64,000 nt of DNA from Mytilus californianus (lineage: Eukaryota), in NCBI RefSeq assembly GCF_021869535.1, contig NW_026262701.1, forward strand, positions 17,918,001-17,982,000, written 5' to 3'. The position numbers were made by a program, and so were the translations under genes. Every line of letters starts with the position of its first letter. Within the stretch, counting starts at the first letter, position 1. A model generated the notes under the pieces. It saw nothing but the letters and a program-made list of their open reading frames with translations, made no database searches and had not been told where the DNA came from. This document shows positions 4,731 to 35,626 of the stretch, one piece after another.

Positions 4731-6514
4731 AAAAAATACAAAGTTAGTGGACTTTGTGGCGATAAAAATCTGTTGTGACCATAAGCGGTGAATTTGTGTG
4801 TCGTCGAAAGGACTTATTTTTTACATAATAAAAAAAAATCGTTTAGTTTTATTATGTATTTCGATTTTTTTTTTTTTTATTTTGAGATGACCCCTTTTTT
4901 TTCGTCGACTGTAATTGTAAATCTAAAGTGTAATCCTAGGTATATACCTAGTTTCCGCAAATGTCTAATAGGGATCATATGTACAAATTCTTCCATACAT
5001 CTTTATCATTTTTGGTTAAAATTGGCTAAATATTCAAGAAAACATAATGGCATCGTTAATATTTCAAATCCATCTCGCTTTTATTTATGCCCACATGACA
5101 ATGACATTACTTTGTTTGAAGCACAAATAGGAATGCTTAAGACGGAAAACAAAACATGTATAATTTGTTGTCATGCGTTACCCTAGAACGATTTTAAATG
5201 TGTTAACGTTTCAGATAAACTAACTTAATGTTAAAATTACACTACAAAGCTAGCATAATTATTTTACCTACTATACTATTTATTGCCGATAGAATAGGGC
5301 ACAAAATGTTGACCATCGCCATTTTGTTATTCTTAATTGTACCTATATCATCCAATAACTATGTATCTGCATTCAAACTCTTAAAACAAAAACACTAATA
5401 GTGCATTTGGTTAGGTGAGTGTTTGGTTTTGCGATTGTAAAAAACAAATCAGCTTTGTCCTTTGTAAATCGTAAACAAGATTTTATAGTGTATATGATGC
5501 ACATTATTTCAATTTCTATATTATGACATAGTAGTGCTTTCCCTCTGTAGAATACCCAAAACATGAACATCATTATATTATTATTTATCCTAAAAATCTC
5601 TTTCTGCGTTTGAATATTTAAATGTTAACATGAGTTGATGGATGAAACACTTTACTCACTTGCGCTATATATCAGTAGATGTTTTCCGTATAAATGCATG
5701 TTATCTGAATACTGATTTCCTAGTTCATTCGTTTAGTCTTGAGTTTTTCAACCAAAAATTATGATATATATTTTTATATTGATTCATATGTATTCGTCAA
5801 CCAATAAACCTGTCTCCGCTGTTTTACATGTAAACTGTTGAAAATCAGGTGTTCGATTTATCTAGTCTAAGATGGATTTCATCATGTATTTATTTGTCCA
5901 GAATAAAAGGTTGGCGTGACATATTTTCATAGACGTAAACACTATATGGCAGAACTTTCCAGGCCTTTCATAATATCCGAAATGAATATTCGTGTACACT
6001 GTTGGAAAATATCAATATATGAAGAAAAGAATCCTAATTAGTGTACAGTTGCAATGGTACAATGTATTGTAACTCATGCTTTCGTTTTGGTTTAGTTTCA
6101 TCGTATGTACACACAAAATATTTAAATCAGTTACATGTTGTGCTCTATGTTTAATTTACACTAGCAGTTATATACGTTATAGATAATGCATACTTTAAGG
6201 TTTTTCTTGTCGTAGAACACCCCGAGGTGTGTTCTACGACAAGAAAAACCTTAAAATATGCATTATCTGACTTATATACCGTCGAAAACAATTCTGTTTA
6301 TTACAATTTTGCAGAAATTTCTATCCTATTTTACCGATCATTAAAGTGGGAGATTCTGCTCAAATTAGTTTGGTTATAACCACGCCTAACATTTAAATTA
6401 TAATGTATATGCAAATAAGGTGAAAATAATTCACTAAAATAAAACTCACTAATTAAGATATAAAAATGTGTAATCATTGTCCAGTTATATTAAAAGAAAA
6501 TCCACATAACGACC

Positions 6515-9327
6515 ATGGATGGTATAGATTTGTTAGAGTGGGACCCGATTTTTCTTACGCAAAGTTCGTATTCTCTAGTAAGTGAAGAAAAAGAAAGTGA
6601 TATTCTAAGTTATTTTGATTTAAGACCAAGTGGTAATGATTTGGAAATTACTAGTATAAGTCGTCAATTTAGACACGGTCAACCAGAGACAGCAAAATCC
6701 CTTCAAAACAAGATTGAGGAATCGGTGCCGAAAAATTCAGTCAAAAAATATAAATGGGGTTATAATGCTTTCAATAGTTGGCAAGCCGAGCGCCGTTTAC
6801 GTCCGATATCAGATAATTTAGGAATTCCTCCGAATTGTTTGCAAAAGGATTTGGTACACATGGACAAAACAGAACTGTCGACTTCGTTACAATATTTCAT
6901 TGCAGAGGCCAAAAAAAAGACGGAGGTAAATGTCCGTCCAACAGTATTTATGACCTGTTTTCCTCAATACAGGGATATTATCGTCATCAGAAATCATCTA
7001 GTATAAACTTCTTCATGGATCCCGAATTTCTTCGAGCTAGACAAGTGTTAGATGCTGTCATGAAAGAAAGGGCCACTGAAGGTCTCGGTGCAAATACGCG
7101 CAAGCAGGCTGATGTGATATCGGTAGATGAAGAAGCGTCATTATATGATAAGGGTATCCTTGGCGTGGATAATCCCCAACAACTTCTAGACACGTTGCTT
7201 TATTTGTGTGGTTTGCATTTTGTATTAAGGGGAGGCACTGAACACCGACAGCTCAGACTTAATTCTAATCCGCAAATAACTGGTCCGTTTCAAGATAAGG
7301 ATGCTAAATTAAGATACCTGTTGTACAAAGAGGATGTTTCAAAAGCTAACGCAGGTGGCCTTAAGCACAGAAAAGTTGTTCCAAAATGTGTCCGAGCATT
7401 TGAAAACCCAGAAAACAGAAATAGATGTATTGTTACAGTATTTGAAAAGTGCAAGTCACTTTGGTAAGTAGCTTATTATTTATAAATAACTTTATAAAAT
7501 TGGGGGGGGGGGGGGGGGGGGGGCTTATAGTTAACGCTTTTCAACACTTACAAAAAAAACGACTAATGGTATTCCTTGTACGTTAAGATGACAATAGAAG
7601 AGGGGCGAAAGATACCAAAGGGACATTCAAACTCATAGATCGAAAAAAAATGACAACGCCAGTGGTATCCCCTCCTCCAAATTTAAAAGATGAAGCCCTC
7701 TCTGTACCGATTTCCTTATAAAGGTAAAGAACATGAGAAAATATGAAAATTGAATGGTGTAAAGAATATACAAACAATTAATAAAACTTTAAAAAAAACC
7801 AAAGGCAGCAGAAAAATATGAAAATCGTCTAATGTACATGTAACACATGAAAACAAATCATGAACACAAAACAGACATCCAAAGGTTGAATTAAATTTTC
7901 CAATACGAATCCACAGGATTTAATACTGTTTTATTTAATATATTGATTGTTGGTTGCTTAACGTCCAGTGGCAAATATTTCATGCATATTCAGGACGATT
8001 CTTTAATATATCTTCTCATCATGCTTCAATGAATATGATAAAATCTGAAATATTTGTTGATCTAATCTAACGTAATTTCCTTTTACAGCTAATTTCCTAA
8101 TGCATGCAGGGTAAGACTTTGGTTAGCTTGCTTGCTTTGTTTGTATATTGACAATTGTAATTGGGATAACTTTCAATCAAATTTAAATATAATATATACT
8201 TGTTTAATAATGCCTGTTTATATTGTTTGCAGATGTCAATCTTAAATACAATGCTTCAGCTTACGTTTATACAAACAAAGCAAGTAAGCCAGCCAAAGTT
8301 TTACTCCACAAGCATTAGGAAATTAGCTGTAATTTACCTATAATAATTAAAATCATCTTTACATTATTACATTATGTGTGTTTGAAGTAAAATTTTACAA
8401 AGCGTTTTCTTTTATTTAAGTCCAACAAATGGCGGAAAGGATTGTTTTTACCTTACACCTTTAAAACATATCAAAGATGGACAATGGTATAGCAAAACTC
8501 CTATTGGACACAACACTTTACAAGGCACTGTGAAACGGTTGTTCACAAGTATTGGACTGACTGGAAAACGTACAAACCATAGCCTCCGAGCCTCAGCAGC
8601 AACACGTCTTTATAATGCTGGCATAGAAGAACAACGTGTGGCCGAAACAACAGGTAATATAATAGTAAAATGAAACATTATAATTTCTAGTCTTTTATTT
8701 TTAATATTCTTATTTAGCCCACACAAAATGGCATGAAAAAAAAAACAAACACGAAGGTATTCCTTGTCTGCATGACATTACCCAATAACTGTTCTTTTTC
8801 ACAGTTTTTTTTCCAATTGCTTTAATAGAGAACTGATGATTGTAAGAAACATGTATAATTATCTTTGTACAGAGACTTCAGGAAACTTATCATTAAGATA
8901 AATGATTGTATCTGTCACGATCACGATATTTTGGGTAATCAGATTTACCATAAATCGTCCGCTCGTCTGTTTGTCCGTCATGCTTCAGTTACTGCTAAAA
9001 TTTTGAGTTTTATTCCTTTTATTGTGATGTTGAATATGCAGTTCAATAAAAATAAAAAGTGCTAACGTAAACGCAAAAATAATTAAGCTATGTATTGCAG
9101 GTCATCGTAGTAATGCAGTAAGAGTTTACAAAAGGACTTCTGCCGATCAACAAATAGAGGTATCGAACATCTTGTATGGATTAAGAAAGTCAGATGAAAG
9201 TAAGAAGGCAAAACCACCAGCAGCTGCTGGTGCACCAGTTGGTAGTGCCTCGGTTGAATGTTCAACAAACGAGAGTGACAAAAAAAAAACTGTGACTTGC
9301 AACTTTTCTTTCAATTTTTCGTTATGA
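6515..9327 (+). CDS. Crypton tyrosine recombinase; exons 6515-7463, 8421-8653, 9101-9327; one -1 frameshift at A8 6911-6918; 469 aa if corrected
   Basis: GT-AG introns with matching phases (TG|T = Cys, G|GT = Gly). Catalytic motifs: LRGGTEHR (R), EDVSKAN (K), NHSLRAS (HxxR), GHRS (H), VRVYKR (Y at 9127-9129). Exons 2 and 3 have no stops. Confidence 0.85.
8086..8329. mobile_element. Tc1/mariner-type MITE nested in Crypton intron 1
   Basis: About 60-bp imperfect TIRs (8086-8147 / 8268-8329), CAG...CTG termini, TA on both sides (8084-8085, 8330-8331). Confidence 0.7.
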
Positions 9328-10310
9328 TTAATTCATGTAAAATAAAATGAATAAAATCTGTTAACAAACAGTTAAAGTAGTTTTTCAATCAGGATAAAAT
9401 AATGACCTGACACAGGTCATTATTTTATGCCTTGGAGCACATTTCATTGAAAAATGGTATCGTCCGGGTTGATTCTGAAAAAGAATGACCTATCGTTCTG
9501 AAAGAAAATAACTCCATATAGGTATATAAATGTAAATGAGTCCGCAGCAATTCGAAATTGTATTTCATAGCTTTATGTTATCAGCTACCATTCAAATTGT
9601 CAGGATGTATCCGTACTATTTGACCTTCAATAATTTAAATGGTAGCTCAAAACATAAAGCTATGAAACACAGATGCATTCCTTATGGTCTAAATAAGATT
9701 TAGAATGAAAATATTATATTTTCAGTAACATAAAAACTTTCAAATATAATTCTACTTATTCCTCATTTGACGTCATTTGTTGTTTTCTTTGATTCACCAA
9801 TTAAAGATAAGTTGACAGTTTTTCAACGTATATTTTGTAATTTGCACAATACTTGTAATATTAGCAGGTTTTTTTTCAACAGGCAATTGAAATAAATCAA
9901 ACTTGGAACCACCTGTGCTTCTCTGCTTACCGACTTGTTCCAATACTCTTATGAAGCAGATGTCGTACAGGATCTTCTCACGAAACATTAAAATAAACTT
10001 GCGTCATTCCAAAGGCTTACGTTCTGCTGTGTAGAAAAGTATTAACAAAAATACCAAACTAAAAGGTAAATTAAAAAAAGGAAAAGTCTATAAAAACTGA
10101 CATAACCAAACAACAGACTTTATCAACCAACGGAACGAACGAAAAACAACTGTCATATTCCTGACATAACGTTCCTTCACTAAATTATTCAAAGTTTGTT
10201 GTTTCTTCAACAATACCCGGTATAAAAATGTCAAAAACAGGATTAGAAAAATTAACTTGTATCTAAAGATCTAAGACCGCGAAAAACATGTCGCTAGTGA
10301 GTTAAAACAA

Positions 10311-33840: not shown

Positions 33841-35626
33841 ATTTATATACCAATATGGAGTTATTTCCTTTCAGAACGATAGGTCATTATTTTAATGAAT
33901 CAACCCGGAAGATACAAAGTTTCAATGAAATGCGCTTCCGAGGTTAAAAAAAAACCTGTGCAAGGTATTTGTTTTTCTTGATTAAAATGCAGGGAACAGT
34001 TTGTTAAAGCAAGTAATCGTGAGTTGTTGCAAATTACTGTACTATTTTCATCTTTTAAAGCCCAATTGTATCACATTTATGTGTCAGATTATTAAAAAAA
34101 ACGTATACAATCTGTTGACACACACCTTATTGGATGTTATTTGTGTTGATGCCCGTTTTTTTTTCGTGTTACATGAACATAGCGATTTTGTGCTGTTCTT
34201 GATTTTTTTGGCAGTTATATATTCCTTTTTCTTTTACATTATCTAATTACCAAATAGTCTCATTTTCTAAAGGATAACAGCCACGTAATTAAACTGCGAT
34301 GGGGGAGTATAATATTTAATCCTGGTTCTCATTTTTTTAACGAAAAAATACTATTGCCAAACAAGATGGAGAAACCAATTATTCGGAATAAATTGTATAA
34401 AATTGTTAAAACATAATCTGCTTTTCTGTGGTATAATTGTCATGTAACATTATTTTGCTTCGTGTTGAAGATTTTGCGGTAACCTATAATTGTTAACGTC
34501 TACGTCGTTTAGTCTCTGGTTGTGAGTTGTCTCATTGGCGATCATACCATATCTTCTTTTTTTTTTTAAAGCACCCTCACTTATAAATTTAATTTAAAAC
34601 AAAATACTTGCCAAATGGCTTGTTTTTTCATACACCGTAGCAATTCATTTATATCTTGCTTCATGCATTTCGAGAAACATTTTTAATGTAACTTGACAAG
34701 CCTACTTTGATTCGTCTGTTGAGTTTACTCGAGTATCAATCGAACCCCCATTCCAGAGTTTGACATTTTTAACTTACCCGGGTTAACTCGTTTAGGCAGG
34801 TTTAGTACAGTTACAAAATAGTAACAAACAAGAACAACAAAGAAGAGTGTGATACAAAATAACTGAAATTTTACAAAATATATCCAAAGAAAGGCGTTGT
34901 TAAGTGAAATTTATTTTTTGTTGGTTTTTTGGGGGGAATTACATGAATATTTTTCTTGTGTAAATACTGTCGGTGATGTTTATCAAAAGAACAGAAAAAA
35001 ATATATTTTCTGGATTTTGAGTTGCTAAATGTGACTCTAAGGGGACAACGGGGTAAGATACATTTTTTAAATGAATATAATGGCCTAGTTAAAACTGGAA
35101 ATGATTAAATGATAGAAATTCTTTAATTTTATTATGTCACAAATTTAAAAATAAAGTTTATTGTCGACGTCAATAAAAAGATTAAGTACTGATGCTATAA
35201 TGATATCTTCCATTTTGAAATTCAACTGGAGTCGAGTTTTCACTCCGATTTGGGAAGGTTGCGCATATGGGCATTTACACTGATTTCATAACTGTAGTCA
35301 ACCCTAGTTGAACGAATCTAGATTAATGAGTTGTATATCACCTTATAATTAATCCGTTGGACGTGTTTATACCTGATCGCATCGGAAAAGAATATCTCAC
35401 TTTAATTTAATCGGTAAAATTGGACACAATTTCCAGCTAATCTTTGCAGATAATATTATATACATGATTATTATTTACTAAAGGTCAGATAATGCATATT
35501 TCAAGGTTTTTCTTGTCGTATAAAACACTTCGGGATTACCTACGGTCGGTCTTTTATTTGATCAATCCTGACACCCCTCGGTGTGTTATGCGACAAGAAA
35601 ACTTTAAAATATGTATTATCTATAAC
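33841..35626 (-). mobile_element. Non-autonomous relative of the Crypton element (1786 bp, no YR coding sequence seen)
   Basis: 33841-33990 is the diverged reverse complement of Crypton right end 9380-9531. 35400-35626 is the diverged reverse complement of left end 6176-6350, including the AGATAATGCATA...TTTTTCTTGTCG hairpin. Confidence 0.75.

Follow-up and report, generated by a model that had tools for sequence, protein, structure and literature searches.

The window analysed here, a stretch of 64,000 nucleotides (nt) from Mytilus californianus, is AT-rich animal DNA with a guanine plus cytosine (G+C) content of ~32%. It contains, at positions 6176-9529 of the + strand, a whole Crypton-type element of 3,354 base pairs (bp), delimited by ends that it has in common with at least 10 copies in unrelated flanks and by contigs carrying the empty site. 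Cryptons are tyrosine-recombinase DNA transposons, those of animals having been reported without terminal repeats and with non-autonomous derivatives (Kojima and Jurka, 2011; PMC3212892), while an active algal Crypton terminates in CACCG, inserts at CAYCG and is excised cleanly (PMC9977147). From the results given below we consider, with high confidence, that the element at 6176-9529 is one polymorphic insertion of a Mytilus family of DNA transposons of the CryptonA type. The assignment to CryptonA rests on the DUF3504 domain content of its gene, and the family has been recently active in Mytilus.

Gene organisation and encoded recombinase

The coding sequence of the element lies on the + strand in three pieces, which span 6515-9327 and are linked by introns with GT and AG borders. 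Exon 1 (6515-7463) encodes an N-terminal domain of the QRICH1 type and the beginning of DUF3504, including the catalytic R and K, and is separated by intron 1 (7464-8420, with GT at 7464-65 and AG at 8419-20) from exon 2 (8421-8653), which completes DUF3504 and holds the integrase core, HSLR motif included. Intron 2 (8654-9100, with GT at 8654-55 and AG at 9099-9100) precedes exon 3 (9101-9327), in which the GHRS motif, the nucleophile Y and a low-complexity tail are found before the stop codon at 9325-27. The codons split by the introns are those of a Cys (tg before and t after the intron) and a Gly (g before and gt after). No further open reading frame (ORF) of at least 70 amino acids (aa) was detected on either strand of 6176-9529, and neither a reverse transcriptase nor a Rep/HUH/helicase gene was found among the ORFs and Pfam matches of the element.

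Pfam-type domain searches were run on each exon separately, and what is said of the full-length product rests on a natural protein, P0001, which has 466 aa, comes from Mytilus edulis and is annotated with PF25561, PF12012 and PF00589. Four coding pieces of the window were colinear with residues 1-133, 135-314, 316-392 and 394-466 of P0001 at 86-95% identity, the colinearity being broken only at residue 134, and residues 315 and 393 correspond to the two split codons. An octocoral relative (43% identity) was likewise colinear with the coding pieces. The intron model was accepted because the colinearity with both proteins spans the junctions, and the three-exon gene with compatible GT-AG introns of the original prediction was thus confirmed by its splice dinucleotides, its split codons and its alignment with P0001. 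In addition, wherever the alignment took in a whole exon with its borders, the splice dinucleotides were retained (12 loci, about 8 independent copies). The position of intron 1 is common to relatives of ~50% identity, whose called proteins end in ...SLW, a read-through of the same donor. Intron 1 is old, and the splicing predicted for the window gene rests on homology rather than on reads.

Exon 1 matched the profiles of the QRICH1 N-domain and of DUF3504 (PF12012, E 9e-18), and exon 2 those of DUF3504 (PF12012, E 1e-6) and Phage_integrase (PF00589, 28.7 bits for a cut-off of 27.1). QRICH1, DUF3504 and Phage_integrase were the only Pfam families in the element. The five motifs that had been proposed as a complete catalytic set were all located on the + strand: R in LRGG (7228-30), K in VSKAN (7342-44), H and R in HSLR (8578-80 and 8587-89), H in GHRS (9103-05) and the nucleophile Y in VRVYK (9127-29). 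In an alignment of 12 sequences of the family, the first R of LRGG.EHR was invariant and SK, HSLR, GHRS and Y were conserved; the catalytic K is a probable assignment, made from its position after a beta-strand in the structural model.

The closest solved structure by sequence was that of human QRICH1 (9hjt, E 4e-13), and the integron integrase IntI4 aligned weakly, with HSLR and GHRS placed opposite its HTLR and GH, respectively. P0001 was modelled with AlphaFold; the model, of medium quality (predicted local distance difference test score 70), matched Cre with a template modelling score of 0.57-0.58, normalised to the length of Cre, over about 350-380 columns (E 5e-7), and it also matched QRICH1, Tn1549 Int, XerH, IntI4 and lambda Int. 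Since both the fold and the R-K-HxxR-H-Y set are present, the protein belongs with the tyrosine-recombinase superfamily, so that the domain check proposed with the original prediction came out in its favour, exon by exon. The gene product is thus a putative tyrosine recombinase, modelled with a Cre-like two-domain fold and combining a QRICH1-type N-domain with DUF3504 and integrase domains.

It must be noted that the window copy is damaged. A run of eight A (A8) at 6911-6918 (+) breaks the reading frame of exon 1, the run having nine A in the copies in which this exon is open. Exon 1 measures 949 nt here as against 950 nt, with 0 stop codons, in the copies L003, L004, L006 and L009, and the frame of the ATG at 6515 differs from the one that enters exon 2, the two overlapping around the A8 run. 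Because the frame of exon 1 breaks at this run, the full protein is impossible from this copy as assembled, and the 469-aa spliced product formerly attributed to it does not hold. A homopolymer assembly error may account for the break, the individual with usable reads being one that does not carry this insertion. A further lesion of the window copy is the absence of 72 nt from the centre of the family's 5' palindrome, and with both lesions the copy is probably dead in cis and in trans. In at least two other copies, C143 and C132, all three exons are open through the catalytic Tyr. Near the coding end, an A10 run at 9280-9289 differs in length by 2-4 nt among copies, and therefore the C-terminal tail differs in frame between them.

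Copies, empty sites and non-coding relatives

A search of the window's own assembly (1.65 Gb) yielded 142 matches, among them at least 12 near-full-length copies at 81-98% identity, all of which begin with GTTATAG... and stop at ...GGTATATAA. Their flanks were unrelated in at least 10 sets. The element itself starts with GTTATAGATAATGC and ends with GGTATATAA, and it has no terminal inverted repeats (TIRs), long terminal repeats (LTRs) or target-site duplication (TSD). In DNA from another individual with the same species label (X2), a contig of 1,198 nt joins 5700-6175 directly to 9530-9684, and a DNA contig from a second species label (X10) has the identical joint, 6175/9530. This joint omits exactly 3,354 nt, with 0 ambiguous, duplicated or shared bases, and because it is base-precise the element is delimited as 6176-9529, is polymorphic and caused no target duplication. 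Of the ends first given as 6176 and 9531, the left one was exact and the right one lay 2 nt too far, the true end being 9529 by the empty site. The copy search and the empty-site check suggested for this element have accordingly given multiple copies with different flanks and a base-precise absence in X2 and X10. The family is multi-copy with exact common ends, and this copy is missing in another individual and in another species.

Far more abundant than the gene-bearing copies are sequences that share their ends. Read depth at the two ends of the element was about 100-200 times that of the interior, and a genome search gave 1,101 first-look candidates for the 3' end and 1,235 for the 5' end (as the 188-nt palindrome); the 40 of these 1,235 that were scored were 96-100% identical. 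The loci examined among the end matches constitute a non-coding family of ~1.37 kb, which has the 5' palindrome (96-98%) and the last 134 nt and retains nothing of the gene. Such non-autonomous copies match the 3' region from 9396 to the end of the element at 95-96%. The identifiable DNA ends that had been expected for this element are thus base-exact and common to abundant non-autonomous relatives.

An older non-coding relative, at 33843-35626 (-), lies in the same window, shares both ends and has TAA as its 5' flank. It is composite: its 5' end is shared over about 240 nt and its 3' end over about 150 nt at 82% identity, and its interior (element positions about 312-916) is another dispersed repeat.

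In this regard, the possibility must be considered that the gene is a domesticated DUF3504 host gene of the QRICH1, KIAA1958 or ZMYM kind, spread by segmental duplication. Human QRICH1 is the best solved relative by sequence, relatives bear the database names 'KIAA1958-like' and 'QRICH1-like', and some copies do lie in segmental duplicates with shared flanks (L003/L004, L013/L015 and L009/L016). The host genes QRICH1, ZMYM2-4, KIAA1958 and KCTD1, which are domesticated Cryptons, have the same N-domain and DUF3504 fold as the Mytilus protein, but they are single-copy, syntenic and mostly without catalytic residues, whereas the Mytilus element occurs in multiple copies, is polymorphic and retains every catalytic residue. 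The ends are base-identical in at least 10 copies whose flanks are unrelated, presence and absence are precisely polymorphic, and more than 1,000 candidate matches per end point to non-coding relatives that share the ends only. Moreover, domesticated genes usually lose the catalytic set that is retained here in full (PMC3212892; PMC13465315). A domesticated gene was ruled out by the multi-copy status, the empty site in another individual and species and the complete catalytic set, and we regard it as extremely improbable. The element had been taken for a young, near-functional transposon rather than a domesticated gene; the copies and the empty site bear out the transposon, and 'near-functional' is apt for this copy, with its broken frame and its 72-nt deletion.

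Element ends, target site and possible movement

At the 5' end of the element, a terminal palindrome occupies 6181-6268 (+), with arms (6181-6223 and 6226-6268) that are 95% complementary; in full copies this palindrome has 188 nt. Just inside it, the inner motif ACTTATATACC (6270-6280, +) reads as the 3' terminus together with the opening 2 nt of the 5' end in reverse complement, and it was unchanged in 18 of the copies examined, including ones that are 75-81% identical elsewhere. At the other end, a subterminal hairpin at 9394-9428 (+), with a perfect stem of 16 bp and a loop of 3 nt, marks the beginning of the 134-nt region common to the non-autonomous relatives, and the 3' terminus GGTATATAA occupies 9521-9529 (+), the octocoral relative ending in the same 9 nt. 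Because the 3'-terminal GGTATATAA pairs with the inner TTATATACC, the joined ends complete a long palindrome, and when they were folded in silico, the stem running over the junction was longer by 11-12 bp. In its integrated form the element thus corresponds to a circle that has been opened 9 nt inside the outer edge of the palindrome, in the left arm. The older relative at 33843-35626 gives no support for this pairing because it has lost the inner TTATATACC motif. The two arms differ beside the junction, where 7 nt (GTTATAG) on the left stand opposite 5 nt on the right. This 7-nt sequence is bordered by T-A-N on both strands and was the same at 22/25 of the 5' ends, each of the other three having one different base.

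The left target flank of the window copy is TATAC (6171-6175, +), which is also present in the empty allele. Target statistics are based on 25 left and 29 right flanks, all distinct. On the left, T occurred at -3 in 24/25 (p 1e-9) and A at -2 in 19/25 (p 5e-5), position -1 was never G and -4 was A or T. On the right, a tendency to A-A-T-A-A was seen over positions +6 to +10, where +8 was T in 21/29 (p 2e-4). Combined, the target reads ATTAT^N6ATAAT, a dyad of the tyrosine-recombinase type with a moderately supported right half. Insertion follows T-A-Y, without duplication and without any need of shared bases beyond the T-A-Y preference. The 3' end (...TATAA) and the left flank (TAY) share only T-A-(N) before the cut, a similarity that is significant and shorter than the motif of the described families. 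The model of Goodwin invokes a short similarity between terminus and target, which amounts to 4-6 bp in fungal and algal Crypton families.

The same layout was encountered in distant relatives. The octocoral relative P0024 (locus L081, 43% protein identity) is inserted after ...CAATAT^ in a 30-bp satellite without duplication, and the satellite resumes in register beyond the element, which constitutes a built-in empty site. The L081 element ends in ...GGTCGGTATATAA, its terminal 9 nt being GGTATATAA. About 250 nt upstream of its gene lies a palindrome with arms of 59 nt, followed directly by TTATATACCGACC; a 46-nt stretch at this place is an inverted copy of the element's 3' end, and beside the junction 7 nt stand against 5 nt. 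A long array of the 30-bp satellite extends over L081:4368-4636 and from 7015 onward, with large inverted duplications of the array on the 3' side. In a metagenome contig (L082, 36% protein identity) the upstream palindrome is preceded by the 3' end of another copy, with the junction TCTAA^GTGATAG and the same 7/5 asymmetry. In Mytilus, L081 and L082 the two arms both carry CCGAGG, oriented alike, and near variants of it occur in L083; this results in a tandem G.A mismatch in a predicted hairpin. At L084, a Haliotis locus named 'KIAA1958-like', a large palindrome was absent, and this relative may be dead or domesticated; no element ends were recognised in L083 and L084. A literature search, limited to one collection of papers, found no description of such ends, neither hairpin nor palindrome being mentioned in PMC3212892 and PMC13465315, and the end structure of the family is apparently undescribed.

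From these features the following movement can be proposed. The recombinase would cut after TAA at the 3' end of the element and after TAY in the left flank or target, and the element would be excised as a circle with the junction TATAA^GTTATAG in the left arm of the palindrome. The 7 nt flanked by T-A-N on both strands would act as the crossover region, and the circle, an intermediate that we infer, would be re-inserted at T-A-Y sites.

Several results weigh against parts of this scheme and of the gene on which it depends. Splice junctions 7463/8421 and 8653/9101 were bridged by none of the RNA-library contigs (X18), and the reads across both junctions that had been proposed as a check were found neither in these contigs nor among the raw RNA reads of X21, where the roughly 6% of the run that was read yielded a few matches, all of them in exon 1. 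Exons 1-3 are all represented in the X18 contigs, and the unique intron bins are absent from them; one RNA-library contig extends 52 nt into intron 2, where DNA carry-over is possible. At the DNA level, the right-half consensus of the target is drawn from the 29 right-hand sites, the best p being that at +8, and the spacing of the target, 6 nt, differs from that of the site carried by the element, 7 nt. The reads contained no circle junction, and the assembly holds only 2 sites resembling a head-to-tail junction. In these the 3' end is joined to the 5' end with 1 mismatch each (G000:C86:12509722-12509744 and C116:1373735-1373757), and a reversed-pattern control for the same search gave 0.

A different enzyme could in principle move the ends, such as a HUH/Rep protein working on single strands, of the kind found in Helitrons or IS200/IS605, with the recombinase as a passenger. 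In agreement with this, there is no TSD, subterminal hairpins are present at both ends, insertion takes place just 3' of a short fixed motif, and the left cleavage site lies in the flank while the right one consists of the element's last bases. Such a cleavage geometry resembles that of IS608 and Helitrons. However, the recombinase is the sole gene between the ends in every full copy, and recombinase, upstream palindrome and GGTATATAA end recur together in the octocoral at 43% protein identity. The target is dyad-like, as are the core sites of tyrosine recombinases, and the termini differ from those of Helitrons, elements that begin with TC, finish with CTRR and insert at A^T. A Helitron or other HUH element was rejected, given that there is no Rep/HUH ORF, that the ends are GTTATAG... 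and ...GGTATATAA and that the target is TAY^, and we consider movement by another enzyme very unlikely. An assembly artefact and an integron-like cassette array were also rejected.

If the element's own tyrosine recombinase is the active enzyme, it must be asked how the strands would be exchanged. In place of a two-step, Cre-like exchange between duplexes, the site could be a folded single strand or cruciform in which one pair of strands is exchanged, as in integron attC and the CTX phage, replication finishing the process. The 7-nt spacer has zero homology with the target bases, yet GTTATAG is nearly constant at the 5' ends; this favours the single-strand exchange because a two-strand exchange over a non-identical overlap should make the overlap variable. 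The asymmetries of the palindrome (7 as against 5 nt, and CCGAGG on both arms) are conserved in three to four distant lineages, and the copy number of the algal Crypton rose despite clean excision (PMC9977147). On the other hand, the single-stranded or cruciform intermediates are hypothetical, ordinary binding sites on duplex DNA would show dyad symmetry as well, and the best fold matches are duplex recombinases of the Cre type. Covariation between the arms is minimal because the copies are too similar: with RNAalifold on 13 palindromes, the alignment was gapped at the centre and only about 1 compensated pair was obtained. We therefore hold exchange through a folded single strand to be rather unlikely in comparison with a Cre-like duplex.

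In its broader form, extended to DUF3504 Cryptons from cnidarians to molluscs, this proposal would give them a conserved, hairpin-forming and asymmetric attachment site used for a homology-free exchange of a single pair of strands that replication resolves. The asymmetries meant are the crossover spacer of 7 nt as against 5 nt, the tandem G.A mismatches and an outer stem formed only with joined ends. The proposal is offered tentatively, as a possibility we would not at present favour. If true, it would account for the lack of terminal repeats and duplications in animal Cryptons and for the ability of Cryptons to gain copies despite clean excision, and the TAA^/TAY^ exchange would resemble the integron and CTX systems.

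Comparison with known systems places the Crypton recombinase and its site as follows. With animal CryptonA elements (PMC3212892; the Glomhopper paper, PMC13465315) the Mytilus family shares a single tyrosine-recombinase gene with DUF3504, the absence of reverse transcriptase, TIRs, LTRs and TSD, non-autonomous derivatives that far exceed the autonomous copies, and a mollusc host, Lottia being already listed. Those elements are reported without terminal repeats, whereas the Mytilus family has exact ends with a 5' palindrome of about 190 nt and an inverted copy of the 3' terminus just inside it, and a target rule, T-A-Y^, emerges from its insertion sites. In Chlamydomonas, CryptonF-1_cRei, the Crypton whose movement was observed first (PMC9977147), is similar in that its terminus motif resembles the target (CACCG/CAYCG, perhaps comparable to TAA/TAY here) and in that clean empty sites carry the target alone, but it belongs to group F, which is without DUF3504, its shared motif has 5 nt as against 2-3 nt here, and no palindrome is reported. 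Cre/loxP and other simple tyrosine recombinases have the same two-domain fold and R-K-H-R-H-Y set, and the core inferred for Mytilus likewise consists of inverted half-sites (T-A-N^) around a 7-nt spacer; unlike in loxP, the spacers of donor and target are not identical, the site is off-centre in a long palindrome, and the protein has a QRICH1-type N-terminal extension. With the integron attC and CTX-phage attP sites the likeness is by analogy only, in a site that can form a hairpin and conserves unpaired bases close to the crossover, and in insertion without homology or duplication, the Mytilus host being a eukaryote and its recombinase of another lineage.

To our knowledge, how animal Cryptons move has never been worked out, none has been seen to move, and their ends have been described as featureless. 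The Mytilus family offers a direct test of this movement, given its base-exact ends, its natural open copies and its readable target rule, and its sharply defined ends, predicted to form hairpins, could show how Cryptons cut and paste. The non-coding relatives, suggested by more than 1,000 candidate end matches, define the minimal sequences needed in cis, the end structure being conserved in the octocoral. In addition, the family is a possible source of a compact recombinase that comes from animals and has a defined DNA site, and it gives context for the origin of host genes of the QRICH1 and ZMYM type.

Other sequence features of the locus

Beyond the element, an inverted repeat with arms of 40 nt, 90% complementary, and a 33-nt loop lies at 9559-9671, 30 nt past the 3' end; it belongs to the flank and is present in the empty allele.

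Intron 1 contains a run of about 24 G at 7501-7524, where the reads are apparently cut. Two stretches of the same intron, 7598-7650 and 7942-7998 (about 53 and 57 nt), are ultra-abundant repeats found in many contexts. Their contig depths sum to about 3e5-7e5 in the DNA runs, and RNA libraries contain them too; the 57-nt stretch 7942-7998 is missing from several sister copies. Finally, a 250-bp insert resembling a miniature inverted-repeat transposable element, with terminal inverted repeats of 65 nt, is nested in intron 1 at 8083-8332. It has dozens of copies in the genome at 87-94% identity, and in one X10 contig 8 other letters stand in its place.

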